NCBI RefSeq assembly: GCF_003704095.1 | Contig: NW_020847248.1 | Span: 868,001 to 932,000, forward strand | Reading direction: 5' to 3' | Length of the DNA stretch: 64,000 bases | From: Pocillopora damicornis | Lineage: Eukaryota | Shown: in pieces, positions 23,252 to 51,563 of the stretch | Position numbering within the stretch: the first letter of the stretch is position 1 | Layout of the letters: the number at the start of each line of letters is the position of its first letter | Made by a program: the position numbers and the translations under genes | The notes under the pieces: model-generated | What the model was told of the DNA's origin: nothing | What the model saw: the letters and a program-made list of their open reading frames with translations, nothing else | Databases searched by the model: none

Positions 23252-26200
23252 ATGATCACGCAGAAGAATTTATTTGCCTCATCTCTTCGAGGAATTCTTC
23301 TGTTCCTGACTTGGCAAACTATCAATTATAAAGGTAATTATTTTTTGTTTCTGTCAGAAGTATATTGAATAGAACTGAACCAATTATTTTCGCTGAGGTA
23401 GACAAGAAGGTGAAAATATTCTTTCATAACGGGATCATTGTATGACCAAACTTTAACATTGTCTCAATTCCGTCTCATCGATCATTCAGCGCATAATTAN
23501 NNNNNNNNNNNNNNNNNNNNNNNNNNNNNNNNNNNNNNNNNNNNNNNNNNNNNNNNNNNNNNNNNNNNNNNNNNNNNNNNNNNNNNNNNNNNNNNNNNNA
23601 CGCATTCAATGTAATATCAACGATTATCAATGAGAAGTCACCGAGTATGCATTCCACCGAGACTGAAATAGGAAACAGCAAGAGGATTTAAGGAAACCTA
23701 GTGAGACAGCTCTAATATAAAAATGAAGTAAATAGATTTCCTGTTGAGAATGAAGCTATTCCATGATGTCACGCAAATATTCAACTCTTGGCCTTATCTC
23801 ATTAGCGACCACTAGTCATTTCAGAGCACTTTTCCATACCAAACCTATCATTTTAAATTACACAGAGGCCGGCAGAATCTCTGGTAAGCGATCAATCTTT
23901 AGCGATAAAGGTCTTGACTGTTGGGTAGTTTCTTCTGACTTCTTTTCTCATTTTTTTCCTTACTGGTAGGCGTGACATCGACCTCATGCCAATCCCAACC
24001 ATGTCTGTACTTCAGCAACAGTCGCGCTCTCCAAGCGTTAGATATCAGCTCCTCCAACTTGTACTCAGTCGCACCAAACCTCAACTCTGTTGATGCAGTC
24101 GACGTGCACGTGAAACTGAATTTGGTGTACTGGAGCGAGCGTCAGCCAAACGTCATAAAGAGGCTGAACATTACTAGTGGAAAAGTGGAGAACGTGTCAA
24201 CAGACAGCAACATAGGTCAGATCAAAGGTATTGCGGTGGAGTGGGAGAGTGGACTAATTTATTGGACTGATAACACCAATCGTCGGATCGAAGTAGCGCA
24301 GTTGGACGGGAAAAACAGACGGGTCTTGTTTAGTAAAGATATACGAAATCCTCTTGGAATAGTTGTGGACCCAAGAAAAGGGTATGTACCAGCTTTTTAT
24401 ATGATAGAGGGCTCTCCATAGATAAATTGCTACGGATATTATCAAAAGGAGGAAATGCACGGAAGTGGAACTGCCAGCAAGCAAACTGCTTCCTAAAGCA
24501 CAGAGAAACGTAAACGACCAAGATGCGGTCGATTTTAATTTCTCATCTGATTGGTTGAGATGGCGGTGCGAGTTTTCCGGCTGATTTTATTACAGAGTTC
24601 GGTTAAGCAAAACCAGTGCCATCCTGGAGTACTTTTGAAACTCAATTGAAAATTGGTTTATGATAAATTCTGCAGCAAGTTTTTTGATAGGTTCTTTGCA
24701 ATGCCCTATTTAAAAACAGACGTACAGATATCGTCAGTTGGATTTTATGTTGTTGCAGAGCGTCTAGCTTTGATGTAGAAATTCGTGTGATTCACTTGCG
24801 GTACATAGATCGATTTTGAGTTTTGACTTCATACCCTGACAACGAGTTTTCGAACGCCTGGCCAGCTCAACATAGGTTCTCCAGCCCCATCCCCAAAAGG
24901 TGAAGTAATGTTTGACTGTGACACTTCCTCTCGTAGCTCCTGAAGCGTATTCTTGATTCTGCCGGGTTCAAACCTTTAGTCCGCAAGAGTTTTTTCACTA
25001 GTTCTTCCACGCCCACTTACATTTCACGTTTTTCTTCATCACTGGTATTGTAGGTACATGTTTTGGTCAAACGGAGGATTTCAAAGTAAAATCGAGAGAG
25101 CTTCTTTGGCAGGTGAAAATCGGAAAACCTTGGTCAACCTTGGGAGCTCGTATTCTAACGTTCCGGTCGGGATGACCATCGATTTCCAAGCAAACCGTAT
25201 ATATTTTATTAGTCGAGGACTTTTTACCAAAAGGCTGGAAAGCATTGACTTTGATGGAAACACCCGACAACAGTTTACATCCCTCTCATCCATTAGTTAT
25301 CCTTATGATATTGTATTGCTGAGCGGAGTGTTTTACGTATCTGACGCGAGAGGCAACAAAATCTTCAAGATCGAGAAGTCCACAAAGAGATCTCTGGGAA
25401 ACTACGCAGGTCTTGGTTTCAGTAATCTTCGAGGGCTTGAGATGTTCTCCTCCTTGCGACAACCTAAAGGTACGATCAATATTCAAGTAATTTGTCTCAA
25501 CAATTGTGTTAAAAATTTGAACTCAAGTTTGACGTGGGCAAGTTGGACACGCAGTGGCACGTAAGACTGGACTGGGACATTTTGTCTCAACTCTTACAGT
25601 GCCTTGCTCTATCTGAAAGGTACAAAGCGATGCCAGCAATCTGACAAAATGACGAATCACTTAATATCATAGTTCCTTAATGCTACAATAATCGCATAGG
25701 CTCTGATGCTCTGAGCGATCAGATTCGAGAGTAGACGTTTTTTTGGCAGGCGCTGACCTAGAAGGAGTATGGCTGGTGGAGAAATTTGGGGGAGTATTAG
25801 CGTTCAGTGTTAGTTAACACGAAGATGATTTTATCATAAAGCAGGCGGACTCATGGCCATGTTAAACTTGCAATTTCCTATATCAAAGCTGGTTATCATC
25901 ACGTGTTCTCGACCGTTGGACAAAAAATAATATTCATCCTCATGGTGTTATATTTGTTACGGGTATTTTTATGAGTATCGTTTAAAACCTTGTTGTCTCT
26001 GGTTCTTTCGTAGGTAGCTCTGCTTGCCACAACAATAGTGGATGCAGCCACCTTTGTCTGCTATCGCCAGCAGGGAGCCAATGCGCATGTCCAATAGGAA
26101 GCATTTTAAAGCCTGACGGAAAGACGCGTGATGATTCAGGTAAACAATGTAAACCGCCAAGTTGTTGTTTTAGAACAACTGTGCAAGTGTTGAAAAGAAA

Positions 26201-29200
26201 AGTGCACTGCCAAGTGGGGTGGGCAGGAGGGGGGAAGGGGATAGAAGGCTATTTCTGCATTTAGTTACATTAAAAGATCTTTTTTGGGCAGACTATATTA
26301 TTTCTAATATTAGTTTTCGAGAACTTGTGAATTTTTGAATGATTACTTATCGTTTATCGTTTCGCAAAAAAATAATGGTTTCGATGTATTTCACACACTT
26401 TTTAGCATCCAAACTTCTCCTATTGGCTGATAAGACGCAACGAGGACTCTATCAAATACCATTGGGAGCATCAATTTCAAAGAAGGCCATGGCAATCCCA
26501 TTAAACAATGTCAGGAGACCTGTGGGGGTTGAATTTGACCCCCTTAATGGCTTCGTCTACTGGTCTGACAGCTTCAGAGACGTAATTTCCCGAGTCCATT
26601 TGAATGGCAGCACACAGGAGGAAGTGGTGGATCGTTTGAGAACACCTAATGGCATTGCAATAGACTTCATTGCGAGAAATCTGTATTGGACAGACAAAGG
26701 GTCAAACAGAATCGAAGTGTCTCAGTTGGACGGCTCCTTCAGAAAGACTCTTGTGTATAATGATCTTTGGGATCCACTTGACATTGTGCTCGACGTGGAG
26801 AAGGGGTAAGGGTAAATATTACCTCTCTTAAATCAGTAAAACTGTGGCTCGTAGAGTTCTGAAATCACTGAAAGAAGACATAGTATTTGATCATTATAAG
26901 TAAAAAATCGTCCATTCTTGTAAAACTACGAGATGCACCTTAGGTTATATGGCTTATTCTATCAAGTAAGATCTTGAACTACATCTTGCCTGTAGATATC
27001 AGTGCATGACCTATGGAGAGAGAAGCTCTTCACTTACCAAGAAAGTCCTTGGCAAACATTTACAGACGTTTGCTTCTGTATTAGTGCGATTTGAGAACTT
27101 TAACCCATGAGATAAAATCTACAGCTTGCAGCACAGCTTTATTATTGTGGGTAATGAACATCTTTCGATTTATTCATTACTAAGAGCTGTCATGATTTCT
27201 TCATCACATGAGAGACAGCTCAATTAAGATGAAAATAAAATTGTCGCCTTTTCCAAGTGAAAGCTTTTGTATAGAAATACCTTTGTTGTAGAGGAAGACT
27301 TGGTTTGTTCTAGGCACCTTACGGCTTGCTTTCATCGATGTCCTCAGCACTAGAGAACATGGATAAGTTAACAAGATCAAGAGTAAGGATTGTGTTTTAA
27401 AACTGTAATTGTCGCTTTTGCAGATACATGTATTGGAGTCAGGAAGGGAGTTCATCCATCGATACCAAAATAGAACGAGCCGATATGGATGGAATGAACA
27501 GAGTTGTCGTCAAAAGCTGGAATTATTACTCTCATACCACTAGGTCTCCAAATGGCCTCGCCCTAGATAAAGAGCAAAATCGTCTGTATTATTTCGACGA
27601 TTACACAGACCGTATCTACTACGTTTCACTGAGTACTGGCGCCGAAAGCACTCTATTGATCAGACAGGGCAGTCCCAAGGGAACAGTCGTACATGGAAGT
27701 TACATTTATTGGACAGAGACACAAGGTCAAAGTGGTGCGGTCTACAGGGCTGATAAGAAATCAGGAGAAAATGTCGAGAGCGTGGTCAGCGGCCTTGTTG
27801 GGCCGGAAGATATCTGCGTTTACGACGCAAACGACTCGTTGCTCCAGACAGGTACGTTTCATGCTGGGTTATGAGAAAGCAATAGTGCTTGTATTGAAAA
27901 ATCTCATGGATACATTTTTAACTTCCCCTATCTTCCGGTCTTGCGTCTGTAGTCTCCTCTTTTACTTAGCTTATCTTATCAATCCTCTTCTCTAACTGTC
28001 TTCAAGCACTCTCTCACATGAATCTCCTTTTTATCTCCCATTACAATGGCCTTCTACCTGAAAACATTGAATTTAAGTTTCCCTTGACATGATTTTGTTT
28101 TTGTAAAATTGCAGTGAAATCAAATTGTAGCAGGAACAATGGAGGTTGCAGCCATCTTTGTTTGCTCACTCCAGGCGGGCATCGATGTGCATGTCCAAAT
28201 GAAATGAATTTGAAGCCCGACGGGAAAACTTGTAAGTCAGAAACAAGAAGAATCGTTGATAGCTACACGAGATGAAAGATATATTTAAAGTGAGATATAA
28301 GAGCGCCTCAGCCAAATATATTCTAGGTTTGCAACGCTCAACATAAAACTCGAGACATCCTGTCAGAAATACGCTCATCTTCACCGATTCCGTATCGCGT
28401 CTAATGCAAGAAAATTTGAATTGCATATAACTCGGCATCACAGGTGTAAAATTTTCACCAAGTATGGTCTCTGTAAATGGTGAAATAAAAACCCTATCTT
28501 AGCGATAATGTTTGGGCTAGATAACTGATATTCATCGTATACCATTGCAGGTCATTTTAGCGAGTTTTTACTTTTCGCCGACTCAACAAAGAAGAAGATA
28601 TACCTGATTAATATCGACAACCAGCATTCACAAGTGGTACCCCTGGAACTAGGTAACCTTCAAGAGCCCGAAGCACTGGACTTTGATCCGCAGACTCACT
28701 CCATTTATTGGTCTGACCTGCAGTTCCGTCAAATAGTACGCGCTAATCCTGACGGAAAATCAAAGACGATCATTGTTAACAGCGGTCTCCAACGACCCAG
28801 AGGCATTGCAGTTGACTATGCTGGAAGAAATTTGTATTGGACAGACTATGACGGCGAAAGGATTGAAGTCGCAAAACTTGATGGATCACAGAGGAAGGTT
28901 TTAATCTCTCGAAATATTGAGAAGCCTGTGGACATTGTGTTAGACTTGAATAACGGGTAAGAAAGATAATACTTCCCAGGATTGGCTTCGTTGTCTTTTC
29001 TACTTAAGGCACTTTGGATCAGATTGACTATAGCTACGTTTTGTTTCGAGGTCATTTTGTCGACGATGGCAGCAACCAGCCATGCAGTTGCAAGGATACT
29101 TTTAGACTTTAGAGGCTGATGAACATTAATTAAAGCTTGCCTATGCAAGCTTAGTTTCTCACTCCTTAATGCTTTGCACAAATATTTTTATGAAACATGT

Positions 29201-32200
29201 AACGACAAGGTATTCTTTTTTTCATTTTTTCCAGTCTTATGTACTGGTCGTCGTGGAGTACACAGCCAAAAATAGAGCAAGCATCCATGGACGGAAGTAA
29301 TAGGAGTACGGTTGTTTTGTTTCAAAGAAGCTGGTGGCATCGTTCCGCAAACCCTAATGGATTAGCTTTGGATCCCGAAACTAGCAGGCTCTTTTGGGTT
29401 GACACGACTAAATCTCTGATACAGTACACGGACCTTGGACTTGGCGATGGTTCCATAACCACTCTCCCTGTCCCAAGTTTCTACTTATCAAATGCTTATG
29501 GGTTGACTTTGAAAGACAATACACTGTATTGGAGCACCTCTGGATCCATTTATGCGGCAGACAAGAAGACGGGTGGTAACGTGCGTCGTTTAGTAAGGAA
29601 TATAGCGAGTCCTCGAGATGTTCACGCATATCATAACTATTCAGCAATTCCAGGTAAGAGGAAGAATTAGTTTTAGTTCATTCGAATTTCCTGTCTCAAC
29701 TTAATATGCCGAGCCAACTTAGATGACTATCAACTTAGTATTTTCAACCATTAAAACGAACGCACCATATGCCAGTAAATCTCGAAAACTATGATTATTT
29801 TGATGTTAAGAGTAATGCAATTATCATTGTTCCGCCTTCGTTTTATAGTCAGCTGATTTCTCCACTTGAGCTTCTCATTGCATCAATTCATGAACTGTTT
29901 TAGTAAGTCAGATATTGAGAAGTTTCGTTTTTTGCATCGGCCACCTTATCGACATGTATTTCCTTTATTACACCTGAGCGAATCCTTTAAAATTACCTCT
30001 CGCTTGATTCTAGCCGATCTTTCTTCCTTGAAAGCTTAATCTTTGCTCTGTTTTCTTTCAGATGACCACCCTTGCTCTCTGTTCAATGGATGGTGCACAC
30101 ATCTTTGTCTGTTAAAACCAGGAGGGTATCAGTGTGCGTGTCCAACTGACACCGGAGATATTCCCTGCAAGACTACACCTGTTATTCCACCTTCGTCCAC
30201 ACTGTCGCTCTCACCTTCGTGGTCGCCTTCGCCATCCTCGTCGCCATTGTCAATATCATCCCCACCATCAACAACGTCTTTCACATCTACGCCATCTTCC
30301 ATGTTAGCTGTTTCAACATCGTCAAAGTCACCACTGCAATCAACTCCTCCATCTCCATCACCACTATCGATGCAAACATCGTCGTTATCGCCGTCACTGT
30401 CAGTTTTCAATTTCCCAATTTCATCATCCTCTCTGCCGCTGTCATCATCATCGATGTCGTCGCTGTCCGTCTCTTCCCCGCAACAAGAACCTGCTTCATC
30501 ATATACATTATTGAAGCGGCCCTCATCTTCCATCGTACCATTATCACATTCTTCCGTGATATCAACTTTACCACCCCTAGTTGATGCGTGTATTTCAAGA
30601 CCTTGTAAAAATGGCGGTACATGTCTCGAGGGAAACGAGGGTAGCTATACCTGTCGGTGTGCCTTAGGATATACCTGGCCTCATTGTGAGCTCAATATAG
30701 GTGAGTGCCAGCTACTGAGAGATTTTAGTCAAAGTAAAGGTCTCCAAGTTTTCTTCAGAGTAAGATAACGATTCTATATTTTATAGGTCACTGGTAGAAT
30801 TATACTTAAGGATTTTATAAAGACGAGTCCAAAGTGACATTAAAGATATGCAAAATTATTGGAAATTTTTTGATATACAGCCCCCATACGGCTCGTTACG
30901 TTGTGATTTGCACTGAAATGTAAAATTAGCGAGCTGTTCCTTGAAATAAACCCAACTCCCTTCCTGCTCATCCAAAGAAAATATCTCAGCCTACCTAAGT
31001 ACCAGGTAGAAGGAGAGGACTGAAACGAGGAAATTGGTCAAAACTTCCAGATTTAGTGCCTAGGTAAAACTATGTCATCTATGAGAGTCGTGAAACCCAG
31101 GAATCTATGTAATAATTCCTTTCTTTTCAAATGTTTCTGTTTGTAGGTGACAATGTCGTGAGTATAGCATTCAAAATGACCACGGCTCAAGTAAGTGTTT
31201 TAGAAATCTTCTTTTCCTCACCATGACACCTTTGAAATCGCGAAAATTGATATCATGTCTGATATGACAATGCCTTTGCACCATTAATTTGAACCTAATA
31301 ACCCAATACACAGAGGGTCACGCAAATTGAGACTCGTGGAAAAAAACTAGCTGGGGTGGCGGATTTTATTCACATAAACAAACCAACAGACACAAAGAAA
31401 GAGTAGCAGAAATGCAAAAACGAAAAAAAACTATCTTTGCATAGAGTGGGGAATAATATCTAAGCTGTCAACAAATTTTCATTTTGATTTCATTTTCTTT
31501 ATTCAAGTGGAACCAAGACACTCTCAGGAAGAGCATTGCAAAAGCATTCACCGAGTACTGCACAAAAGACCAACGCCCTTGTAAACTTCGTAAGAGGTAT
31601 TGGAATTCATCAAAGCTACGTTTATGTAACTTTATAGACCGCATCTCTTACTCTTTAAGAGCACATCATCTTCACATTTATGGGAGTGAAATAGCATAGG
31701 TTATCAATAAGGTAAACTAAACGTTATAGTGATTTAGAATGTTTACTCTCTATAGAACGATATTGTGCAATTTGATGCTCGATGCTACTTCATTGAAACA
31801 TGGCGATGTAAGATTTTTTTTTTTTACATCAGTTGTTTTAATTCCCTAAATTGTTAGGCTGAACGATATCAGAACCCGATCAACACCGCGCATCGACGAT
31901 ATCAATGTTTTCAGAACCGAGGACGTGTTAGTGCTTGGAAGGCATTTTGAAGGACACCAACGCCTATTCAGCATCGTTCTGGCAGTGTTGGTACCTGAAG
32001 AAAAGCAGCGCCAGTCATCTCTAAGACAAACCATCTCAGCTGCTACTCTCTGCAAAATGATAGTAAAAACGTCAGAACGTATTTCAGAGTATATGGATAA
32101 CGTTGAAATAGTCTTAATCAATGGTGAAAAGGAGCCAACTTGTGCGTCTAACCCAGTGGACGATGATGAACACGAAGGCAAAAACGGACAAATCAGTGGG

Positions 32201-33756
32201 AATAAAGAAAGAAAAGTGGATAGTCAGCATGAAGAAGGGTTATCTTCTGGTGCTACAGCGGGAATTATTTTGAGTATCATTTTAGTTATCATTCTCGTGG
32301 GTGTTGGCTTCGTCTTAGTGAGGTGAGTGCTTACCTTTCGTGAGTTAGTCGTTGTTTGACTATGAAAAGAAGCCGCGAACAAGTAATTCAGAGCTTATGA
32401 TGCAATTTTTTCCTTGGCCGGGTTTAGGATAATGCCCTCCTTATTAAGAATGAAAAAATCTAAATTAATCCTATTTTCTATTTAACATATAAATGGGTCT
32501 ACAAATGAAAGGATGTGATAGTCATGATCCCTTTGTTTACTTAGTTTTTCAGTAATGATTAGGCGAAATGAGAATTATAAAAATAGTTCATTCATTTTGA
32601 TACAAACGTTTGAGCAGCTTTTTAAGGATTTTTAAAAATACAAGATCCTTGTGCACTACATTAGACCATGACAATAGAATGCTTTATAATCGTTCGATTG
32701 ACTAAGATATCTTTCATGAGACAAAACGGGACAACGTTAGTTATAGGCTCTATAAAATCATCAGTGAGATCGGATGTTTCGACTCTGAGGAACTAATTTC
32801 GTTTCAAGTGTCATTAAAAGAAAAACTGCAATAATACAGGATTTTTCTGATATTCTCTTTCATTTTTTTTATTTTTCCAAAGGTCGCGGGAAAAGGGGTT
32901 GAAAATTTTTAGAACCCCTTTCACACTTTCATTTAACAATCCTGGCTTCGAGCCTCATCATTCCAATCTTCACGACGACAATTCAGGAGGAGTTCCCTTC
33001 AGTATTCCAGAGACTTACGATCCTTACGAGGTAGTAAAACGTCCATCTTCAATAAGCGAAAGACAGTTTCAGAACCCAGAAACATCTGTTTACGAGCAAG
33101 AGTGCGAGAATCCTTTATATCTCGCAAAGAGTAAAGATGGTGATTTCCAAAGCTCAGCTGGCAATCCAATTTATGAGTCCATTAACGGGCACGGGAGTGG
33201 GAATCCAAAGGGACCAAGACCTGAATCTGATTATGGAAGCTTGGCCAAACGAAAATTTCATCCCGATGGCGACCGAAATGAAGAACCACTGTATGCTAAG
33301 CCAAATAAAATAAAACCTCGTTCGCCCTCTGGGTTTAATTCCCCTGAAGCGCAAAATGGCAACACTTATGCCCAGCTTGGCTTGGGGAGCGTTGTGCAAC
33401 CTAGCCAAGATAGTGGTTTTGAGCAGCCTGGGTACGCGTCACTCGCTCCCTTCTCTCGAAATATCCACGGAGGCAATGGCAAAGGTGTTAGTTCTCGCAA
33501 GGGTATTTCCTCGCAGGATAATTTTTGGCCTCAAAACACTGTGCACCCCCAAAATCCCGAAAGCCAGAATGAAAAACCAGTGAGTCCAAGGAAAGCTTGT
33601 TTCCTTGGTTACCCAGCGAGCCGCCTGGCAGATGAGAATTGTAGTAAAGAGCAGTTAAGTAGTAAACAGAAAGTCCGAAGTACAACTTTAAAGGACAAGG
33701 AAACGCCTGTCTTACATCTTCCTACTGAGCCTGGTCCTGAAGAGACGATTATCTGA
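23252..33756 (+). CDS. LRP-like single-pass receptor A: signal peptide, 3x(YWTD propeller+EGF), Ser/Pro/Thr stalk, EGF, SEA-like domain, TM, about 290-aa Tyr-rich tail. Exons 23252-23333, 23970-24381, 25054-25469, 26014-26139, 26406-26805, 27424-27851, 28115-28231, 28551-28956, 29235-29653, 30062-30700, 31147-31190, 31508-31596, 31858-32322, 32883-33756
   Basis: Multiple YWTD/YWSD repeats ([14 protein letters not shown]), CSHLCLL..CACP EGF repeats, [22 protein letters not shown], tail NPLY/NPIY; GT-AG with consistent phase. A 100-N gap lies in intron 1. Confidence 0.9.
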
Positions 33757-36700: not shown

Positions 36701-37083
36701 TTATCGATATTGCCAAATTACTAAAGTTGTTTCCACCACTTAAGACAAATTTTGAAGTCTGCATTATTTTGCATGACAAAGTGTTTTGTTCGCTTAATAA
36801 CATTCAAACACTTCCTAGCTTTGTAAACAATAGGAGGACTACAGCGAAAGTAGCCAGCGAATTCCTTCTTGACATATAAGTTTTTCCATATCAACGTCCA
36901 AGGTATTTACTACCGAATATTTAATCTATTTATCACGTATATCATATCTAGCTATCTTTGAATTGACTAGGCAATATACTAAGCTTGCACGATTATAAAA
37001 CGAATAACATCCAAATAGGTACAATATCTGTGATACAAGACTGACAAATACATGGACTCTCCATAGGATCGCTGTATTGCAGT

Positions 37084-40000: not shown

Positions 40001-43000
40001 ACTATGCTTACTGAGAACAAACTCGGTTAAAAAATCTGTTGAATTAAAGAAGAAAGAATTTTCACGAATTCGCCTTATAGAACAAGGCTGTCCTCAGGAC
40101 CTCGTCGAAGAGATCTAAGCCGAATTACAATTCTCATCACGCAACACGCAAACAAAACGAAAACATTTAGAAAGATTTTGCCGTTCGTTACGACTTTCAA
40201 CCCTGCTAACAAGAATCTTAAAAAGATTCTTATGAAACAATGGCATCTTATTTAAGGCAACAATTGTTGCTTATCGGAAGGACAGGTCTCTAAAAGATTC
40301 TCTTGTTATAGCGCAACTTCCTTCACTTTAATTACAAAACAGCATCGAGGAGTTATAATATTAATTCATAATATGTAGAGAGACTGCGTAATATATCGTA
40401 AGTATTTTTTTTTGCAGATACATGGTTTGGGTGGAGCACGATTACGCAACGAGGAAGATAATGCGTGCAGATTTGACAGGCGAAAATCCTGTAGAGTTGC
40501 AAAAACTTTTTTATGGCTTGCCTCTATATGTCATTATTAATCACAGCGATAGTCGAGTGTACTGGACCGATATTCATCGTTCATTTACTTTTATTGGGTC
40601 AATTGGAATTAACGGAAATCATTTCAGACGTGAGAAATATCTTCATCCAACTTATTTCCCATTTGATTTGGCAATCTCTCAAAATATCTTTTATTGGGCT
40701 GACCAGAATTTGCATGGAGTCTCGTGGTTCAATCAGAGTTCGTCTTCCAGTGTGGTGAATCTTCAAAATCTATCTCCTCTTGATTTAATTGGAGTGGCAA
40801 TATCTGATTCATCAACTCAACCAATAGGTATTTGATAAACATCTTTGAGATGCATGATTTCATAAAGTGTCATGCGGCAGAAACGATTTGAAGTCAGAGT
40901 ATGAAGAGAGGGTTTAGTCACTATGTGCCTACCTTTTTTAGTTAGTACTGTTAAAATGTCTCTCGAAATCACCATCTGAAGTATATATACTTTTCAAAGC
41001 TTCTTGTAGAGACCAGTGGCATAGTTAAGTCCTAATCAAATTTCATCCACGACCCGCTTTCATTGGCAAGCCCTATTGTTAAAGAAAATTCTAAGTAGCA
41101 GTTAAATGACAAAACCTTTTTTTTCATGGGGGAAAGTTTCCCATTCGACAAAGAAAAATATCAAGGGAACACTCATCAGGGAAATTAATCTCTGTAAATG
41201 AGTCCTCTTTCAGTGAAAACGGCGCAAATTTATATTCTTCTCTATTTTCAGCGATCCAGGAAAATCCGTGCGTAGTCAATGATGGAAATTGCAGCAATTT
41301 GTGCCTGTTAACCCCAGGAAGGGCAAGAAAGTGCGCCTGCCCTGAAGGAATTAAATTAAGGAATGACAGCATCACTTGTGAAAACGGTAAGTGAGTACAA
41401 CCAAGAAATGACTTAGATGAGAATGCAAATGATCATTGATTAAGCTAGGACTAGAGTAACTATTACTGCTGCTGTTTACAGTACTCTACGAAATTATTAC
41501 AGTTTTAGGGTGTAGACCATAAATCCTACGCTCTAAACTTTTCAACAAATTCATGACGCCAAAAGCGCATAACCTAGGTTATATGCTTTTGATGCCGCTG
41601 AATTCATAAAAACTCCCTAAACAGTACTCTGTAGATAAAAAATGAAAGTTTGTGGCCTTATAAAGAAAATCACTTTTACGATATCATGTCACATTTCATG
41701 AAATACGTCCAGACGTTCACTCTGAAGTGAAGATTGCGCCTCTAAGTAAAAATGAATACTAACTCAGCCAATGTCTTGGAGTCTAAAACAGCGTATAATG
41801 AGAGACAAAGCAGTAGTGAAAAACTGAGAATGGCGACGATAGTTTTTAGGCGAAACGTGAATCATTTCATCATGGCTCTAATGCAAGAATATGTTTGGTT
41901 CTGTAGAAACTGCGGCTGCAACACTACCACCGCCCCTTCCAGGTATGTTCTCAATCCTTAGCATATTAAGCACTTTAAATTAAGGTCGTGAATACAATGG
42001 TCAAAATATCGCTAGCTTTGCACGAAGTTGCTATCACAGGTGCAGTCCAGGGAGCATTTTGTTATCAAAACAGTAAGCGATTCACATCATTACCGACTGC
42101 CATTAATGACTGTATATTCTATCAGTGCAAATCAGAATTGACGGAATTCATTGATGACAAGTGTTCTTCATCACACTTAAAGGAAAATGGTCTTTTTCGT
42201 TCAGTTAAGTTTTGATTAAAATATGGTGGAACGGACAGCTCTAAAAAGTTCCATATATACAGGAAGCCAACATAATTAAAAGTTGCTATGAACACTAGGA
42301 AGTTAAACACCACTACTTACAGACTTATGTTGCTTGAACCTCTAGCCATACAAGTTCGCCTCAGGCCCCGGAGCGCCTCCAAGGAAGGTAAAGGCCGTGT
42401 CGAGGTTTTCTATAACGAAGTTTGGGGAACAATTTGTGATGACTACTGGGGTCTCGACGAGGCGCACGTTATCTGTCGCATGTTGAACTATTCGGGAGCA
42501 CAATTTGCACCCCGGAATGCATTCTTTGGCCGTGGATCAATTTTTATGCCAATTCACTTAGACAATATTAAGTGTCGAGGCGACGAGTCGACAATTGCTG
42601 CGTGTCGCCATAATGGTTGGGGCCAAAATGACTGCTTACATTCAGAAGATGCCAGTGTGGTATGTTGGACCGACTCGGCTCCTCCTATTCAAGGTATGGA
42701 GCCTCTTGTAGTACAGCGTTCTCGCGATGAACAATTCCTCTTTATTGTTTGTTCGTCGTTTAAACGATAGTTGTTATATTTCTGATTTGTATTTGTAACA
42801 ATAGAATATTTTGATTCACTAGAATTGCAAGAGTGCACCAGGAGTCTCTAACTTCTGTGTTTAGAAATGGCTCAGTTCCTCTTTCATTCACTCCTTTCTT
42901 ATTGAAACTATGAGAGTTACCAACGCCAAGAGGTCTTAATTTCGTAATCCCTCTGTTAAAGTTGTACATTCTGCCTTCCAGTGTGGATAAGGATGCTCAT

Positions 43001-46000
43001 TGCTGAGCTCTGTTCCACAAGTACGATCAAAATGTTCAAGTTCAGCGATCGTATGATAAAAAGCCAAATATTTTATTCCACTTTGCAGAGCCAACTTTGG
43101 CCCCTGGACCCTATCCAGGTACTTGTCTCTTTTGAATTTTGAAGTTAGTTGATCACTGTATCTTGTTCCACGTATAACAATGTATGTAAAGTTACGCTGT
43201 GTACTATTGAATGGCCTCGTGCCGGCGCCTTCTAGTGAAGGTGATGAAGATGGTGGTAACAACATTGAAGATGGCGGCATTGACCACTTCATTCTGCAAT
43301 GATACCTTGAAGAAATGAGGAATCAAAAGCGGTCCTTCACTGCGCATAATTTGCTGAAATTAGACCATTGAGTATGATTTTCAAGACTGTATACTTTCGA
43401 GATTGATTATTTCGATCAGTTCCTTGCTAAATTCGATCAATCGCTCGAGAGCTAAGGAGAATTCACAATAGGTGATACAGACATGGATTGGTTAAAGCTA
43501 ACACTCTCAGTGTAACCCGAATCTTCCCGTAGGGAAGTCCAAAATATCTACTGCGATATAAATGTAGTATGATGAGTCTTTAGAAATGTATAATTTAATA
43601 GTTTTATGATTCCTTGTCTCACTTCAGAACTAAAAGTGCGATTACAAGGTGGAGACAATTATTATAAGGGTAGAGTTGAAATTTACCTGAATGGAACCTG
43701 GGGAACAGTATGTGACGACTCTTGGGGAATTGAAGAAGCCAACGTCATTTGCCGAATGCTGAACCACACAGAAGGAGCCGTCAGCACGCAGTGCTGTGGA
43801 TTCTATAATGGATATGGCGTTTCCGAAAAGATTTGGCTGGATGATGTTCACTGCGTTGGAGATGAAAATAGCATCGCGGAGTGTCGCCATGGCGGCTGGG
43901 GAAAACACAACTGCCGTCACTCAGAAGATATAGGGGTCGTTTGCAAGCATGCTCCATTATCAACACCAGGTATACCTCGTTTTTCTTTCTTTCTCTTTTT
44001 TTCAATTCCCCAGCCACCGTTGCCTGTCTCCCTTCCTTCCCATTTCAAATATTTCTTTAATTACACTTAAGTCCAATATCGGCTCTGTTATACCGAAATT
44101 ATCGGAAGGACAATTTTAAATCCTGAAATCGCTTGTTTATTTACCGTTTAGCTTCAACTCATGTAATCTGTGCCATGACATTCAGTTAAATTTCTAAAAT
44201 TAAATTAAGGATATTTCTTGTCGAGGAATAAGTGGTTGTGCTGTTGACTCTCCTCTCCGGGTAATAGGTGAACGCACAGATGCAAAGAAAATTGAATGGG
44301 ATAGAAAGAGAGGCAGGGATAACCATGCCCTTAGACGAGTAACACCACCTAGGCACACTTAGCCACTTTGATAACAGAGGCGCTTCTATTCTTTCCCCCT
44401 TCGTTTTTGTAATATAAGTCTACAGTGTTCATTATTGTTTTCTATCAAGATCAAATTGTGCGACTAGCAGACGGAGCTCGAGAGAGCGAGGGACGTGTGG
44501 AAATATTCCATAATGGAGAGTGGGGAACGGTTTGTGATGATCACTGGGATATCAACGATGGAGATGTTGTATGCAAAATGCTAAATTACTCGAGAGCACT
44601 GCGAACCCCCAAACAGGCTTTCTTCGGTCCAGGAAATGGTAAAATTTGGCTTGGCAATGTGAAATGTAGCGGGAATGAAACAAGTCTTTTGCAGTGTGGA
44701 AACCCGGGTCGGAATGTTGACATTTGTGACCACCACGAAGATGCATCTGTTATATGCGAAACTGAGGCACCACATTTAGGTAAATTAAAAACCCTTTGAG
44801 GGTCACATGGTATATGTTGTATAAACCTAATTTACTTAACTTTACAGTTCACCACCCTTTTACACTCTCAGAGTTTTGATTTATTTAACATTTAGCTCTA
44901 TAGCCTCAACTACTTGCTAGGAACTCGAGCAACGAACTTCGGATCGCAAAGAAATTGAACAAAAGGATTAATGAAAGAGTGTTAGTGCAGGTAATCCCAC
45001 GACACTGAGAGAATTTTTCTACCTTTAAACAAGGTTGTGCAACCAGGTCATTTTTTTTAAGGTCAATTTTAGAGGTTTTTTAACCAGGTCACTTTTCGAA
45101 GGTCAATTAGATAAAGTAGATTTCGTTCGGAATTAAGAAAATTTCGGAATGAAAAGTAGTCTTGAGAACAGATATGTTTGTAAAATACTACAAGCCCCCC
45201 AAAACCAGAAGATATTCGATGAAGAAGGTTAAAAGCGACTGTTTTTTTTTCTTCAGAATCCAAAAGTTTTATTCTAGCATGTGGACTCGGACGAGAACTT
45301 CTTTATCATGTCCCTCTTGATACGAATCTGCCTGAAAAAGGTATGCCCCTGGCAATAGAGACTAACACTCCACTGGCAGTAACCTTTAACATTGAAGACA
45401 ACTTGATGTACTGGACAGAACAATCTGGATCTATTCATCGTGCTTATTTGAATGGCAGCTTCAGGGAAGTCTTATTAACAGACCTCATCCGGCCCACGGC
45501 TATTGAAATAGACCACGTGGGTAATAACCTATACGTGGCAGATCAAAATGGTGTCACAGTATCGAAGCTTGATGGTTCATATCAGACTCTCCTGATCAAC
45601 ATGACATCTTGTCATGGAATTGCTTTAGACAGCGTAGCAGGGTAAGATTTCTTTTTCTTTTTTTTATAATCTTCATTGCTTGCACACATATGCATCATAA
45701 CATTTCCTGCACTCTGACTAAAAAAGTTTTCCATTTGAATTTATTTTCCACAGGTATATATATTTCACTGTGACTGGTATTAGTCCAAGAATATTACGCG
45801 CAGACATGGATGGTAAAAATCCGCTTGTTTTGGCCAATGTGTCCTCCATAAGAGGAACCATATTGGACATAGCATTGGACAAGGTCAACAATCGACTTTT
45901 TTACTCGGACGAAGGCAACAACATGGTGAAGTATATCAATTTAACCAGTGGAGTGCATCACGCTGTGCTGTACGGTAATCCTCGCAGACCAGTTGGTCTT

Positions 46001-49000
46001 GCCTTATTCAATGGAACCCTTTACTGGACCGGTGAAGGGACTGTGGAGTTGTTTAGTGGTGGCATCTATAAGGTTAAAGCTGACACTTTAAATGGGGGCA
46101 TCGTTCGTGAGGTGGTGGACCTTCTTTCGTATCCTAAAGGAATATATGCTCATGACGCCCGAATGAAGATACCAGCAGGTGGGATCTTTATTAAAAAAAG
46201 TCTCGCCATAATCATTTTTTGCAACAACAAAAAAACGGTTTTAACCTTATTTTCTTTTTTTGCTTTCGTCTCTTATTTTTGTTTTCGATCATTATCTGCT
46301 AAAGTGGGTTTCTTGGCATATGAGAGGAAAACTGATCGATAAAGAAGGAGAGAGAGCAGAGAGGACCAAGAAATAAGCTCACAAGTTACTCCAAAACCAG
46401 TCGTGCAGCATGAGAGAATTTGTGTCAGTTGTCTTCTGTAAACATTTTTTTAGAAAATGATTTCAAATGAATGGTATCAATCGTAGAAATCGGAATATAA
46501 TTAAAAAAGAGACTTACACTATCCTTTACGAACCCAGGTTTTACTAAATGCTTTCGACTGTGCGCAAATAAAGCATTTCGTTGTGACGCGAAATTTTGTG
46601 CACGGTACGCATGCAATGCTTGATTTTTTTTTATTTGATCGAGGTAAAAGTTGTAACAGCTCAGTGCATTAGCATTCGAGTCAAGGTAATACAAAATATT
46701 CTGCTTTTGAATTACTTTCTACTTTTTTTTTTGCCTTTAGTCGATGATAGTCATCCTTGCGCTAGAAACAATGGCAGTTGTTCCCACCTCTGTTTAATAA
46801 ACCCAACAGGCCACAGCTGCATCTGTGTCGGAGCAGGTTCATGCCAGACATCTGTCAGCTCATCAGCCTCTATTACAAGCGCCATGTCCTACTCATCAAC
46901 AACTCATGCTACTGCAACATCAACAGAAATTCATGCTTCAGCCTCAGTTTCTTTATCAATCTCATCTCCGATGTCCTCATCATCACCTTCCATGACCTAC
47001 CATATGGTGACTGAACACGCACACACAACAACAGTCAACTTTTCCCCTTCACCGGTGGCTCCGACGGCAACACGTGTAAGCCTTACACCTTCCCAAACCC
47101 CGTCTGATATCTGTGCATCGCAAAATCCTTGTGAGGATCGAGGTAGCTGCCAAGCTGATGTTATCGAAGGCTACAAATGCGTGTGCTTGGAATATTTTAT
47201 TGGCCAAGACTGTTCAATAGACATAAGTATGTTATTTAGTTTGGTGGTTAAATAGTTATAGTGTTTGTCTTCCTTTGTAACTGTCATAAGAGGGGGAAGT
47301 GATCACGTTGGAGTACAGGTTCGCATATAAAATATATAGGCTTGTTAGATACGAAACTATGCCTTCAAAGCGTAAAAACAACGACAACTAGTAAAATTAC
47401 ACTCTTACATGTTCTTCTTCATTGCCTTTTCATTCCAGTTAACATTTTTCTTCCTATTCTTACAACAGCTGATGAAGCAATTCAGAGTACATGGTGTGAT
47501 TAACAAACCAGAAAGCGTGGAACAGAGGGGGGAAGGGGGTTGGCGTGGGAAAGCAGATTTTGTTTGAAATTTGGCAAGTGTTTCATGAAAAGCTTAACCA
47601 CTGAGGTCCCTGGAAAAAGGAGTTCAATTCGTCTTTTTGATAAATGTTTACAAAGTTTGAATACAAAGTCGCGTATATCTAAAGCCCTGTCTACATGGTA
47701 ATTACCTGCAAGAATGCTCTTGTCTGTTATAGAGCGAGAAGAGGAGGTAAAACTTATCGCTTGATATTTTGATTTTCTCCACAGGTGAAGGAGTGGTGGT
47801 CCTTGTCATAAAAATTCAAGGAAATGAGGTAAGGGGGAGAGGTTACTGCCTAATATAGAGGAATCAGTCTCTAGGATTTTACAATAAGAACTAAAAATGC
47901 ACCCTCTCTCGACATTATTATTATCAGGGAATTAAGAGGAAAGAGGTTACCGCGGTATCTAATTTATTTCTAAAATTTGCTGATTACAATTGCATGTGCT
48001 CAAATTATCCAGACAACATAATAACCGATTAAAAACACCTTTCCTTTCGAAATCCTCAAAATGAAAAATTGTATTGCAAGAATAAGCTTACAGAGTAATA
48101 AATTTAAATTTTCATGAAATTTACTGTAAACGTTTTAACTCCATTCCACAGTTCAACAAAACCGACCTGAAGCAAGTCATCCTTCAAATCTTGAATCGCC
48201 TCTGTGAAGATCCCGAAAGCGAACAGTGTCCAATAACAACATCAGGGTAAGCAAATGCTGATAAAGGTAAACCTATTTCCCCCGAGCAGGCCTGTTCTTT
48301 GTTCTGGAATTTCTTGTAGAGTTAACAGTTCAATGTGAACAAGGCCAAACTCATCGACTTTTCAAACTGTGGGCTGTGCTCGTCCATATCCTTTGTTTAA
48401 CATTCACAAATGCCTCAAAGTTGGAAAACCACTAGTAAACACCACGAAATGATGAGGATATTTAGTATTATCAACTGAGTTGATAACGTAAACTAACCAT
48501 CATAAAGAGTTTCAAAGCTGATGTTTCAAGTGTTAACCTTTCGTTAGCCCTTCGTCATTCGCTCTGACGAGGAGCGAACGCCCGAAACGTCAGCTCTGAA
48601 ACTCTTTAGTGACCAATTTACCTCATAAACTCAGTCGATAATACTAAACTAGCCTGACTTTAAACATATGAAAATCATAAATGTGTGCTGCGGTTGAAGA
48701 AATGAATATAGAAGCGATCCTCGCAGTTATGAACACTATTGAACNNNNNNNNNNNNNNNNNNNNNNNNNNNNNNNNNNNNNNNNNNNNNNNNNNNNGCTA
48801 ACTAGCCAGCTGGGAGCTGGTCATTATGTTGGATCCAAATAAGACCTTAAAGTGGGGAATAATGACTGTAAATATATGAAAATCATATATGTGTACCGCG
48901 ATTGAAGAAACGAATATAGAGGCCATCCTCGTAGTTATGAACACTACTTAACTACCTATTTTAAGTAATAGTTGAAACATTAGAGCCTTATTTCAACTAC

Positions 49001-50892
49001 TAGTTAAGTAGTGTTCATAACTGCAAGGATCGCTTTTATGTTCGGTACTTAATTAGCCTGTTATACTCAGCCACCGACGCAGCATCACAGTTTCTCTAGA
49101 CACTTACCCCCTTTAACGACCAAACGATCGTTTCACAGATATGTCTGTTAAGCTTAATTTGAGAATCACAACAAAGATCTCCAGTAGCTGCGAAGCTCTA
49201 ATGGCAAATTGTAAGCTTTATTGAGGTGCCGTTTCCATCTTATAGAGGTGTTAAACTGTGGAGACCTTATAATGTTTTTATTTGCCAATTTCTTAAGCGG
49301 GGCAAGAAGAAAACGAGAAGTGCCAAAGGAAACTTTCAGTCACGCAGAGGTCATAGTAAAGGAACCGAAAAAAATCAATGGTAACCTTCAAGTAGAGCTA
49401 GCTGTCATCAAACGGATGTCCAATGGTTCAATATTTGTTATATCTGGCGCAAATCTTGCCAGGATAGTAAACGCTTCGGCGGCAGAAATCGGTCATAAAC
49501 TGGGAGGGACGTTATTAAGTGTCATGTCGAAATTCCCTGGACCAACAGCTCAGGCTACACAGTCTACCATGCCGGTTGATAATTCCACGACAATAACACA
49601 AAAACAACCCCAGGATAGCACGACAGTACCTGGAACAACGACCGGTCAGGTACCAGCTGGTCCGGGTTCTGCAGCTGCCAATAAGGGAGGAGGAGACAAC
49701 GGTGGAGTTATCGGCGGTGTGGTGGTAGCCTCCCTTGTTATCATCATCTTGGTTATCGCACTGGCGGTCTGGTATTTCAGGTAATAAACTTTGATTCATG
49801 ATTTCCTTAATTCATACTAGCAAAGATTAAAAAAACCAAAACCCTCCATGGTAAGCAACCAACGGAAGATAACAGCCAGTTTTTTTTTCTCTATTCATCT
49901 CAAATGAGGGAAAAAGAGAGCAGCACAGAATACAATAAAAAATACGAAAAAAGGGAACTAAAACCATATAAAACCTAACAATAATATAATAATATTTAAT
50001 ACTTATATTGCGCTTTTTCTATAAAAATACTGAAACATGTACATGTACATGTACTCAGCTGCTAGACATGTACGACTGAAATGGAGATCAAACACCAAAC
50101 AAAAGTGTGGATAATTGAGGTTGATTCTTAATGTATTGAGAGAATTTCCACTTTTGTTTCCTTGTAAACGGAAGAAAAAACATACCCTGAAGGCGATACA
50201 TTTGCAAAAACAAAAAAAAAACTATCGAAAGCGAGCGTTTGTCCTAATACAGCAGCAAAACTCGAGTAATCTTTAAACAAGAGGGTGTGTCGTGTGGTTG
50301 CTACTAATGAATCACTCTAAAGCGAAATCCTGAGGGAAAACAATGAATTCAACGCAATTGTTCAGCTCGTTGTAAACTAAGAATGAATAACGGAGGACGT
50401 AGCTAAAAACTATCACCAGAAGCCTATTAGTAAAAAAAGCTGAAAAAATTGAAATGTAACAAAAACCAGAATCAAGTAGCACAATTCGTTTCTTTGCAAT
50501 ATTTCCTAATCCATTTCATTGGTTTTTTTCTGTCAAAAGGGTAAAAATTCCAAGTCTCGCTTTTTCTTACAAAAGGAACAGTGATGGTCCTGAGCTACGA
50601 GTGGCTTCGTTTGAGAATCCCGGATATGAAACCGGAATAGGATTTGCGACACATGGTGATGATCTATACCAAGATCTACCTCCGCCGGTTGTTCTATCCC
50701 CGTACGAGGATCTCAATGACTATGGCGCTGTTAGCAATCCTATGTACTCTGAATTTGGCGCCGACCATGAAGCTTCGGTTAGGAGGTCTAATTTCGGTAC
50801 AAGTTTGTTCAGCAGCCATGGGAAAGAAACCGAGATTGGAGCGAATGATGCTAAGAAAAGCAATGGAAGTATGGCAGTAAATAAGATCTCTT
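37084..50892 (+). CDS. LRP-like/SRCR hybrid receptor B: signal peptide, YWTD propeller, EGF, 3x SRCR, YWTD propeller, EGF, Ser/Thr stalk, EGF, SEA-like domain with RRKR, TM, tail with NPxY and ITAM; stop codon hidden in the gap. Exons 37084-37192, 39347-39764, 40418-40827, 41252-41386, 42346-42693, 43628-43969, 44450-44779, 45257-45641, 45754-46178, 46741-47226, 47785-47828, 48152-48246, 49298-49780, 50540->50892
   Basis: IYWTD repeats; three GRVE..WGT[IV]CDD..W...C..L...I[WH]L[DG]..C.G.E..C....C.H.ED..V.C SRCR domains; TM GGVVVASLVIIILVIALAVWYF; exon phases consistent and matching receptor A. Confidence 0.9.
39978..40330 (+). mobile_element. Penelope-like retroelement ORF remnant (region C-terminal to RT), frameshifted and with stops
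   Basis: Reads FVKGEALCLLRTNS...KILPFVTTFNPANKNLKKILMKQWHLI...IVAYRKDRSLKDSLV, resembling the PLE post-RT segment. Confidence 0.7.
48461..48648. mobile_element. Inverted pair of Penelope-like terminal repeats (palindrome) containing minimal hammerhead motifs
   Basis: tttagtattatcaactgagtt ... aactcagtcgataatactaaa arms; + strand gct-CTGACGA-ggagcgaacgccc-GAAA-cg-TC-agc at 48561-48594. Confidence 0.75.
48665..49045. repeat. Tandem repeat with a unit of about 210 bp spanning an N-gap, ending in an inverted partial unit
   Basis: atatgaaaatcata..gtgt..gcg.ttgaagaaa.gaatataga...atcctcg.agttatgaacacta occurs twice; its reverse complement tagtgttcataactgc.aggatcgc is at about 49008-49035. Confidence 0.75.
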
Positions 50893-51255
50893 NNNNNNNN
50901 NNNNNNNNNNNNNNNNNNNNNNNNNNNNNNNNNNNNNNNNNNNNNNNNNNNNNNNNNNNNNNNNNNNNNNNNNNNNNNNNNNNNNNNNNNNNTAGTTTCA
51001 CATTTTTAATTATATTTTTCTAAAAGATCTAGTTAGCTCTAATTGCGACACACAATAACGAAAGGGCGAGGTTTAGCTAAATTATTTTATGGTTTTGTTT
51101 GTTATTAAAAAGTCCATATTTTTGGATGGAAACCATGTTAGGAGTTTGTTCAATTTTGTGAAATTTAAATTATGGGCATTGCTACTTATTTCGCAGCATT
51201 TTTAAACCAGTGTAATTCATAGCTCAGACGCCTTGTTAATCTCTTCGCCGTCTTC

Positions 51256-51563
51256 TCAAACAAGAACGGTTTGGCCTTTGTTTTCACGCCCCTGGTTTGT
51301 ACCAGTCTCCTTGCCATCATGTTTCATTTTGACCACACTGTTATCTTCCAAAGAGATCTTATTTACTGCCATACTTCCATTGCTTTTCTTAGCATCATTC
51401 GCTCTGATCTCGATTTCTTTCCCATGGTTGCTGAACAAACTTGTACCGAAATTAGACCTCCTGACCGTAGCTTCATGGTCGGCGCCAAATTCAGAGTAAA
51501 TAGGATTACTAGCTGTGCCATAGACATCGAGATCCTTGTCCGGGGATAGGACAACCCAGGCGG
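51256..51563 (-). pseudogene. Inverted partial duplicate of the last exon of receptor B
   Basis: 51351-51563 is the reverse complement of 50682-50892 with about 16 substitutions and a 2-nt indel (counted by eye), and continues LEDNSVVKMKHDGKETG...VLV*. Confidence 0.85.

Follow-up and report, generated by a model that had tools for sequence, protein, structure and literature searches.

Two adjacent LDL-receptor-related genes without LDL-A repeats in the coral Pocillopora damicornis: a common exon plan and a conserved NPxY/ITAM-like block in one of the tails

Do two neighbouring receptor genes of the coral Pocillopora damicornis form a couple of activating and inhibitory immune receptors, or are they relatives of another kind? 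The question is raised by a 64,000-nucleotide stretch of NCBI RefSeq assembly GCF_003704095.1 (contig NW_020847248.1, positions 868,001 to 932,000 of the forward strand; hereafter the window), in which gene A (23252-33756) and gene B (37111 to past 50892), both on the + strand, encode predicted type I membrane proteins. A reading of the DNA letters alone (the sequence-only reading) had described them as paralogues without low-density lipoprotein receptor class A (LDL-A) repeats, had assigned an immunoreceptor tyrosine-based activation motif (ITAM) to the tail of B and an inhibitory counterpart (ITIM) to that of A, and had proposed that the two are paired immune receptors. Taken as a whole, the observation is partly confirmed and the interpretation partly supported. 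A and B appear to be diverged members of a coral-expanded LDL-receptor-related family without LDL-A, most likely endocytic or engulfment (scavenger-type) receptors, a reading that we hold with moderate confidence.

Gene models were rebuilt from stop-to-stop frames and GT/AG sites, and all domain, homology and fold searches were run per exon, unjoined. Two orthologous loci, referred to as sp3 (ENA ERZ25067556) and sp2 (ENA ERZ25071797), were reached from exon-sized open reading frames (ORFs) in other assemblies and the contigs that carry them. Genome-wide searches covered the 234.35-Mb assembly (4393 contigs), where the window is C3883:868001-932000, and 90 kb beyond the window were also read. 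RNA evidence concerns the region 45200-50892 and comes from contigs of four poly-A RNA runs belonging to two studies, the runs being poly-A metatranscriptomes labelled marine metagenome.

Both genes follow one plan. After the signal peptide come propeller/EGF units and a Ser/Thr stalk; a further EGF and the 44-bp exon lead into a juxtamembrane module that bears a basic site, and the transmembrane (TM) segment and FxNPx[YF] follow. Exon phases are identical: the 82-nt first exon ends in phase 1, the propeller halves run 1-2 and then 2-1, EGF and SRCR exons are 1-1, the 44-bp exon passes from 1 to 0, the next one from 0 to 2, and the TM exon is 2-2. In both genes an Arg codon (AG|G) is split where the post-TM exon junction falls, and the N-terminal start reads CQSQPCLYF in A and CQSNPSLYF in B. 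As for the ligand-binding part, A has three propellers and B two, with the three SRCR exons of B filling the slot of A's middle propeller and EGF.

According to the predicted model, gene A comprises 14 coding exons and ~1638 codons. Exon 1 (23252-23333, read directly with its donor GT at 23334) supplies the start codon and signal peptide, and its sp3 counterpart (L021:4780-4848) is 70% identical over 23 aa. Exons 2-9 (23970-29653, bounded by GT/AG sites) hold three two-exon YWTD propellers matched by Pfam Ldl_recept_b (23970-24381 with 25054-25469, 26406-26805 with 27424-27851, and 28551-28956 with 29235-29653), the first and second of which are each followed by an EGF exon (26014-26139 and 28115-28231, respectively; Pfam FXa_inhibition/EGF); these exons are 63-89% identical to the orthologous ones in sp3. 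Exon 10 (30062-30700) carries an EGF, a ~150-aa Ser/Thr/Pro-rich stalk and a second EGF (Pfam EGF/hEGF/FXa_inhibition). The juxtamembrane module and TM (31147-32322) occupy the 44-bp exon (31147-31190), an exon ending in LRKR (31508-31596; the motif covers 31586-31596 and is completed by the initial base of the exon that follows) and the TM exon (31858-32322, TM at ~32258-32320), for which 31915 is an alternative acceptor and the upstream acceptor is the one kept in sp3, where the 44-bp exon and the basic cluster are conserved as well. The tail exon (32883-33756) adds 290 aa and the stop codon. An assembly gap (23500-23599) falls within the predicted intron 1 (23334-23969); in sp3 nothing but an intron of ~1.15 kb separates the signal-peptide exon from exon 2. 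At the sixth-Cys position of the first EGF, exon 4 has Arg (CGT; GKTRDDS) where sp3 reads GKTCDNS; a genuine substitution, an allelic difference or an error in sequencing could each account for it.

Gene B opens with a predicted exon 1 (37111-37192, 82 nt, phase-1 end) holding the start codon and signal peptide. It is the sole candidate between A and B that combines an ATG, a hydrophobic stretch and a phase-1 donor, and it is 58% identical to sp3 L009:15147-15224. By Pfam, it is followed by propeller 1 (39347-39764 and 40418-40827; the first of these, exon 2, is 84% identical to sp3 and 71% to sp2), an EGF exon (41252-41386), the three SRCR exons (42346-42693, 43628-43969 and 44450-44779, with PF00530 E-values of 1.6e-28, 1.2e-30 and 7e-33, respectively; the same exon-wise scans give no SRCR in A), propeller 2 (45257-45641 and 45754-46178) and an exon with an EGF, a Ser/Thr stalk and another EGF (46741-47226). 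The juxtamembrane module and TM (47785-49780) are made of the 44-bp exon (47785-47828), a second exon (48152-48246) and the TM exon (49298-49780, with RRKR at 49305-49316 and TM at ~49707-49778), and the tail exon runs from 50540 to 50892, where an assembly gap interrupts it.

For the 3' half of B the model can be compared with RNA. Contigs connect the 3' boundary of the third SRCR exon with 45257 and give the GT..AG joints 45641^45754, 46178^46741 (the latter in three runs) and, in four runs from two studies, 47226^47785, 47828^48152, 48246^49298 and 49780^50540. Over the RNA-covered 3' exons 8-14, B is transcribed and spliced as modelled. An alternative acceptor of the tail exon, 50576, is ruled out by the RNA, which sets the acceptor at 50540. 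The gap 48745-48796 is intronic, since the joint 48246^49298 skips it. The third gap (50893-50992), of which the sequence-only reading makes no mention, cuts the last exon, and the C-terminus of B thus lies outside the window sequence; RNA contigs extend 521-1032 nt past 50892.

The RNA contigs also bring two side observations on B. In 3 of 4 runs the contigs carry an extra 18 nt, in frame, at 46875/46879 in the Ser/Thr stalk, in two slightly shifted registers; this is a length polymorphism. Within the intron before the TM exon, the segments 48430-48620 and 48810-49190 reach a contig depth in the hundreds or thousands, show numerous loose ends and joints of non-canonical type, and probably represent a repeat that is dispersed and strongly transcribed. 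On both sides of the gap 48745-48796 lies a 90-nt direct repeat (48655-48744 and 48863-48952, 87% identical).

Regarding family membership, the two core features of the LDL receptor family part company here. YWTD propellers flanked by EGF modules are found by Pfam in both A and B, and LDL-A ligand-binding repeats in neither: a regular expression detects no LDL-A signature in any of the six frames of 23000-51100, exon-wise Pfam scans return none, and PF00057 has zero matches on contig C3883 vs 150 elsewhere in the genome. The single TM is followed by an FxNPxY-type motif, 17 residues from the post-TM Arg in A (FNNPGF) and 24 in B (FENPGY), which is kept in 58/58 tail homologues spanning that region (these homologues are genomic exon ORFs, unspliced). 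Thus far the sequence-only reading stands: the adjacent, phase-matched paralogues, their CQSxPxLYF start, the propeller-EGF units with three SRCRs in B, the lack of LDL-A and the 44-bp exons, that of B confirmed by RNA, were all recovered.

The homology searches yield exon-level relatives and the orthologous loci sp3 and sp2. HMMER with an exon-2 profile of A and B against 1.84 billion representatives is dominated by giant multi-propeller LRPs, with no full-length orthologue among the matches and B-like matches confined to three exon-sized fragments. In literature searches, a YWTD/EGF(+SRCR) receptor architecture without LDL-A and with such tails is undescribed as far as found.

The distance between A and B is considerable. 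They are 41% identical over exon 2 and 27-35% over the remaining propeller exons, and from the 44-bp exon through the tail BLAST finds zero similarity between them. Judged by sequence, A and B are old diverged paralogues with a common plan, far from near-copies, and they do not show the highly similar ectodomains with opposite tails that characterize paired receptors. The order and orientation of the two genes are the same in sp3; as for sp2, no A-type exon or tail is present within 10 kb upstream of B.

The tail of B carries FENPGY (50610-50627), then, 13 residues on, YQDL-x8-YEDL (50667-50714) and, after 7 more residues, NPMYSEF (50736-50756). With the ITAM defined as Yxx[LI]-x(6-8 or 6-9)-Yxx[LI] (as in PMC9546547), the pattern is present at the location and spacing proposed before, and it arises in 0.5% of shuffles of this tail (P~0.005). 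The corresponding pair is YDDL-x8-YEDV in sp3 and YDDI-x7-YEDL in sp2. Used as a single-sequence query, the B tail finds very close relatives only, and a four-tail profile reaches further, to 64 exon ORFs in which 19 clusters are B-type and 39 C-type (a 96%-identical ORF from another assembly, P0151, is one of the 19 in the motif count). Among the B-type clusters the first tyrosine is kept in 16/19, the second in 17/19 and the strict ITAM in 12/19.

Conservation is concentrated in the same place. Within the block that runs from FENPGY to NPxYS, alignment columns reach an identity of 0.76-0.84 vs 0.3-0.45 in other parts of the tail, and in comparison with sp2 the B tail is 67% identical inside the block and 27% outside. 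The dN/dS ratio between the present genome and sp3 is 0.19 for the block and for the rest alike, with dS near saturation, and only the deeper sp2 comparison separates them; against one orthologue dS is ~0.8-1.1 and the motif block is still conserved. By these sequence measures the motif block is a conserved island in a fast-evolving tail. The claim that B has a tail of the CED-1/Draper/MEGF10 kind, with NPxY, an ITAM-like pair and NPxY, is supported by motif order and block conservation.

The C-type tails, however, bring in the main rival. They read YDD[ILV]..P.xF[AS]PFEE...SNPxYAEIG, with Phe replacing B's second tyrosine, and one of them is found in the present genome 51 kb downstream of the window end. 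Since C-type paralogues carry Phe, the ITAM-like pair reads as the B-lineage state of an older acidic-aromatic block, and with Phe at this position in ~30 paralogous clusters the ancestral block would work without that phosphotyrosine. Because paralogues replace the second tyrosine in this way, pure sorting has to be weighed before any other alternative: A and B would be constitutive endocytic cargo receptors, their tyrosine motifs would be trafficking signals (NPxY for PTB adaptors, YxxPhi or the acidic-aromatic block for AP-2 or other coats), and the ITAM-like spacing of B would be a by-product of an F-to-Y change in the older block, without Syk-type signalling. We regard this as a serious possibility, though on balance a doubtful one. 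It agrees with the block YDD[ILV]-x-P-V-x-[FL]-[SA]-P-[FY]-E-[DE] being common to B- and C-type tails, with the loss of one tyrosine in several B-type clusters, and with two NPxY per tail as in LRP1, the distal one having a hydrophobic residue at +3 (NPMYSEF, NPIYAEI). It agrees less well with most B-lineage clusters, which keep both tyrosines and L/I at +3 down to 71% ectodomain identity, with the acidic residues before each tyrosine, which suit kinase and SH2 preferences, and with the tandem-SH2 kinase loci in the genome.

The tail of A is of a different make. It contains three NPx[YF] motifs (FNNPGF 32932-32949, NPLY 33109-33120 and NPIY 33163-33174), the tyrosine motifs SDYGSL (33226-33243), YAQL (33367-33378) and YASL (33433-33444), and a C-terminal PDZ-ligand-like ETII (33742-33753). 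According to shuffles, both the three NPx[YF] (P~0.0008) and the four Yxx[LI] (P~0.007) exceed chance. The sp3 orthologue of this tail (P0159, 34% identical) keeps FNNPGF, NPLY, NPIYE, EEPLY[AS]KP, YAQL, GYA[SQ]L and the C-terminal GPEETII, with SDYGSL appearing as SGYSSV. The ITIM consensus reported for SDYGSL is therefore there and is kept in one orthologue; the pattern [ILVS]xYxx[ILV], however, turns up in 27% of shuffled A tails (P~0.27) and also fits SPYEDL of B, which includes B's second ITAM tyrosine. The reported lack of ITAM spacing in A is likewise true of the present sequence, where the two YAxL are 18 residues apart and do not form the ITAM pattern, but not of sp3, which has YAQL-x8-YAQL. 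With a conserved YAxL pair that takes ITAM spacing in sp3, A is not cleanly inhibitory, and its tail is, as the motifs read, a multi-motif docking scaffold and not a dedicated inhibitory tail. Conservation of tail motifs, offered as a check by the sequence-only reading, thus returns the B block in sp3 and sp2 and the A motifs in one orthologue on one side, and Phe in the ~30 paralogous clusters on the other.

These results bear directly on the proposal that A (ITIM) and B (ITAM) together set an engulf-or-tolerate decision for microbes or symbionts, which we consider very unlikely. The adjacency of A and B in two species, S-x-Y-x-x-[LV] kept in A's orthologue, the conserved ITAM-like pair of B, a tandem-SH2 phosphatase locus beside the kinase loci in the genome, and the cnidarian precedent of clustered ITAM- and ITIM-bearing genes in the Hydractinia Alr family (PMC9546547) would all fit such a couple. 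However, the architectures differ and the ectodomains are 27-41% identical, which gives no ground to assume a common ligand; the ITIM match is non-specific, for the two reasons given above; A combines the sp3 YAxL pair with three NPx[YF]; further cluster members have other tails; sp2 lacks an A tail within the 10 kb read upstream of B; and A-type tails form only 4 clusters vs 19 B-type and 39 C-type. The interpretation as paired activating/inhibitory receptors is not upheld.

The juxtamembrane module, which spans from the last EGF to the TM, shows a basic cleavage-type site precisely at an exon junction, LRKR in A (KRRNR in sp3) and RRKR in B (RRRR in sp3, RRRKR in sp2). Pfam has no family for this module or for the tails, SEA (PF01390) is absent at E<=1, and a faint NODP match in the juxtamembrane exons has an E-value of 0.11. 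The pattern read from the sequence (a strand on the 44-bp exon, a helix, the basic site, two strands, a helix and a strand) is compatible with a SEA-like or Notch-HD-like fold. No G/SVVV autoproteolysis motif is present in the module, and an RxKR-type basic site stands in its place. A PDB sequence search with a profile of B exon 13 returns TM-like noise only.

This layout also brings up a non-immune, structural or developmental role, as an epithelial sensor, a mucin-like protective protein, a matrix or calcification receptor, or a growth-factor precursor akin to pro-EGF or cueball. A mucin stalk, an EGF, a possibly cleaved module and a TM recall the layout of transmembrane mucins, the architecture without LDL-A resembles that of pro-EGF and cueball, and a feature-space comparison points weakly to a mucin-16-like SEA cluster (score 0.81). 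The many conserved NPxY and YxxL motifs together with SRCR favour uptake or signalling instead, the family is clustered with a death-domain member, and the SEA match is missing from Pfam; such a role therefore seems remote.

The cluster to which A and B belong counts five or more related units, among them members with an F-variant tail and with a death-domain tail, and the exon-2 profile finds further copies on contig C3883 and elsewhere in the genome. Beyond the window, a minus-strand gene has propeller exons of the family type, a juxtamembrane/TM exon and a last exon with a death domain (splicing predicted). A and B would be adjacent through tandem duplication and phase-1 exon shuffling within this larger cluster, and not as a functional couple. 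A broader version of this scenario, speculative and in our opinion unlikely, sees an undescribed immune/engulfment family in which phase-1 shuffling couples one coral scaffold (CQSxPxLYF propeller, stalk, EGF, cleaved juxtamembrane module, TM) to varying ligand modules (an extra propeller or three SRCRs) and outputs (NPxY/ITAM-like/NPxY; multi-NPxY and a PDZ ligand; the F-variant block; a death domain), with B as a Syk/Shark-coupled phagocytic scavenger receptor for microbe or symbiont uptake.

As for possible partners, the genome contains two loci with two SH2 domains and a tyrosine kinase co-linear on one strand (C1902:15463-22419 and C247:186479-194370, both +) and one with two SH2 domains and a protein tyrosine phosphatase (C1986:479310-488609, +), which suggests candidate Syk/Shark-type kinases and a candidate SHP-type phosphatase. 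Homologues of Syk, Shark, SHP and SHIP are reported in Hydractinia and Hydra (PMC9546547).

The endocytic or engulfment reading can then be put as a series of steps, in which adaptor recruitment, cleavage and kinase docking are what we infer from sequence. For clathrin-dependent uptake of the kind known from LDLR and LRP1, FxNPx[YF] and the other NPxY would bring in PTB adaptors of the Dab/ARH/GULP (CED-6) type, and cleavage of the receptor at the basic site would yield two chains that remain associated, as happens in LRP1 and Notch. The acidic YxxL-x7/8-YxxL between the two NPxY of B, if phosphorylated, might dock a Syk/Shark-type tandem-SH2 kinase and so give a Draper/MEGF10-like engulfment signal. 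In A, the three NPx[YF], four Yxx[LI] and ETII end would act as a multi-adaptor docking scaffold comparable with the tails of LRP1 and megalin.

Several findings weigh against this account. The strict ITAM is broken in 7/19 B-type clusters, which together with the Phe paralogues means that the conserved block may serve a phosphorylation-independent role, and YxxL doubles as an AP-2 sorting signal. The membrane-proximal motif of A ends in Phe, its basic site has Leu at P4 and is non-canonical for furin, its first EGF is without the sixth Cys in the present assembly, and its model rests on sequence, RNA support being confined to B. For B, the C-terminus is missing from the window, and an AF2 model of exon 13 alone, built from a 4-row alignment, has a pLDDT of 47 and a pTM of 0.22 (the module spans three exons).

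Regarding the neighbourhood, the sequence-only reading had placed a death-domain gene next to the pair. A minus-strand death-domain ORF does exist at 53362-53832 (Pfam Death, PF00531, E 1.5e-8), but it lies in a 94%-identical, 4.3-kb direct duplicate (52955-57275, minus strand; blastn vs C3883:932248-936303) of the 3' end of the death-domain receptor gene just outside the window, so that what lies inside the window is probably a copied 3' fragment of that gene. The duplicate also holds a Tudor-like ORF (56530-56727). Between this duplicate and B, an inverted partial copy of the tail exon (51352-51555, minus strand) covers its 3' part from the VVLSP codons, with SPDKDL replacing SPYEDL; it and the B tail exon form an inverted repeat across the gap 50893-50992, with 206-nt arms that are 92% complementary. 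A second partial copy, the 5' part up to PPPVVL, is found 28 kb beyond the window (C3883:960183-960341, minus strand; L003:1465-1740). Both minus-strand copies, 40 kb apart, break at the same VVL codons and thus look like one copy split by rearrangement or by a scaffolding error.

Further observations concern the flanks. In sp2 a rhodopsin-type G-protein-coupled receptor gene (L007:19199-20212, minus strand) directly follows the tail of B, and in the present genome a similar ORF (L003:2770-3159, +) lies beside the 5' tail-exon fragment, 28 kb beyond the window; the two positions hint at an insertion or inversion of the stretch that separates them. Farther out, C3883:983157-1019146 (minus strand) contains three B-like modules end to end (propeller, EGF, three SRCR, propeller(s), EGF) with a single stalk, TM and C-type tail at the low-coordinate end, and forms a single giant gene or else three genes, two of which would be without a TM. 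Upstream of A, on the opposite strand, ORF 12167-12424 has a P-loop N-terminus resembling RAD50/SMC-type ATPases.

Among known systems, the vertebrate paired receptors (KIR, LILR, Ly49, PIR, SIRP) resemble the coral locus in their clustered genes and in tails with ITIM-like or ITAM-like patterns. Their ectodomains, however, are near-identical, whereas A and B differ in architecture at 27-41% identity, and both are long-tailed with motifs of their own. In the vertebrate pairs the activating member is usually short-tailed and borrows its ITAM from an adaptor via a charged TM residue. A and B give no evidence for a natural killer (NK)-like activating/inhibitory pair. Transmembrane mucins and Notch share with the coral genes a mucin-like stalk, an EGF and a module of ~130 aa just outside the TM, and Notch in addition a processing site after the first helix, a pattern read here from sequence, the Notch S1 site being a furin site; unlike them, the coral module has no significant Pfam SEA or Notch-domain match and no G/SVVV motif. 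Pro-EGF and Drosophila cueball are, like the coral pair, type I membrane proteins that combine YWTD propellers with EGF and lack LDL-A. In contrast to the coral pair, they have no SRCR, mucin stalk, cleaved juxtamembrane module or NPxY/ITAM-like tail.

Closer likeness is found in the LDL receptor family. LDLR, VLDLR, LRP1 and LRP2 (megalin) have the same YWTD/EGF 'EGF-precursor homology' units, a single TM and a membrane-proximal FxNPxY-type motif; LDLR also has a Ser/Thr-rich O-glycosylation stalk ahead of the TM, LRP1 and megalin have several NPxY and YxxL in the tail, and the likely furin-type cut of the coral ectodomains has its counterpart in LRP1. The distal NPVYATL of LRP1 is an NPxY with a hydrophobic +3, as in the coral tails. 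The coral pair departs from this family in the absence of LDL-A, in the three SRCRs between the propellers of B, in the EGF and family-specific juxtamembrane module added after the stalk, and in the Phe that ends the proximal motif of A. As for cnidarians, the Hydractinia Alr genes (PMC9546547) are also a cluster of type I receptors whose tails outpace their ectodomains and whose members include ITAM or ITIM bearers; their ectodomains, however, are Ig/Fn3-like and serve allorecognition, while those described here are YWTD/EGF/SRCR, and in both cases the motifs are called by pattern only. Clustered ITAM/ITIM receptors are thus already reported in a cnidarian for the Ig-type Alr (PMC9546547), and the YWTD/EGF/SRCR version is new as far as found. 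The coral cluster illustrates how phase-compatible exons can give one scaffold varied ligand modules and signalling outputs.

Finally, CED-1, Draper, MEGF10 and Jedi-1 have EMI/nimrod-type EGF arrays in place of YWTD propellers and SRCR, and the likeness to them is one of motif order in the tail only: NPxY, for CED-6/GULP docking, together with an ITAM-type YxxL/I pair, for Shark/Syk docking, is what the tail of B contains (the ITAM of Draper is cited in PMC9546547). For the uptake, sorting and tolerance of microbes and algal symbionts by corals, cnidarians have so far offered few candidate phagocytic receptors whose signalling tail is defined. By combining scavenging-type ligand modules (YWTD/EGF and SRCR) with a Draper/MEGF10-like NPxY and ITAM tail, B offers a concrete candidate.

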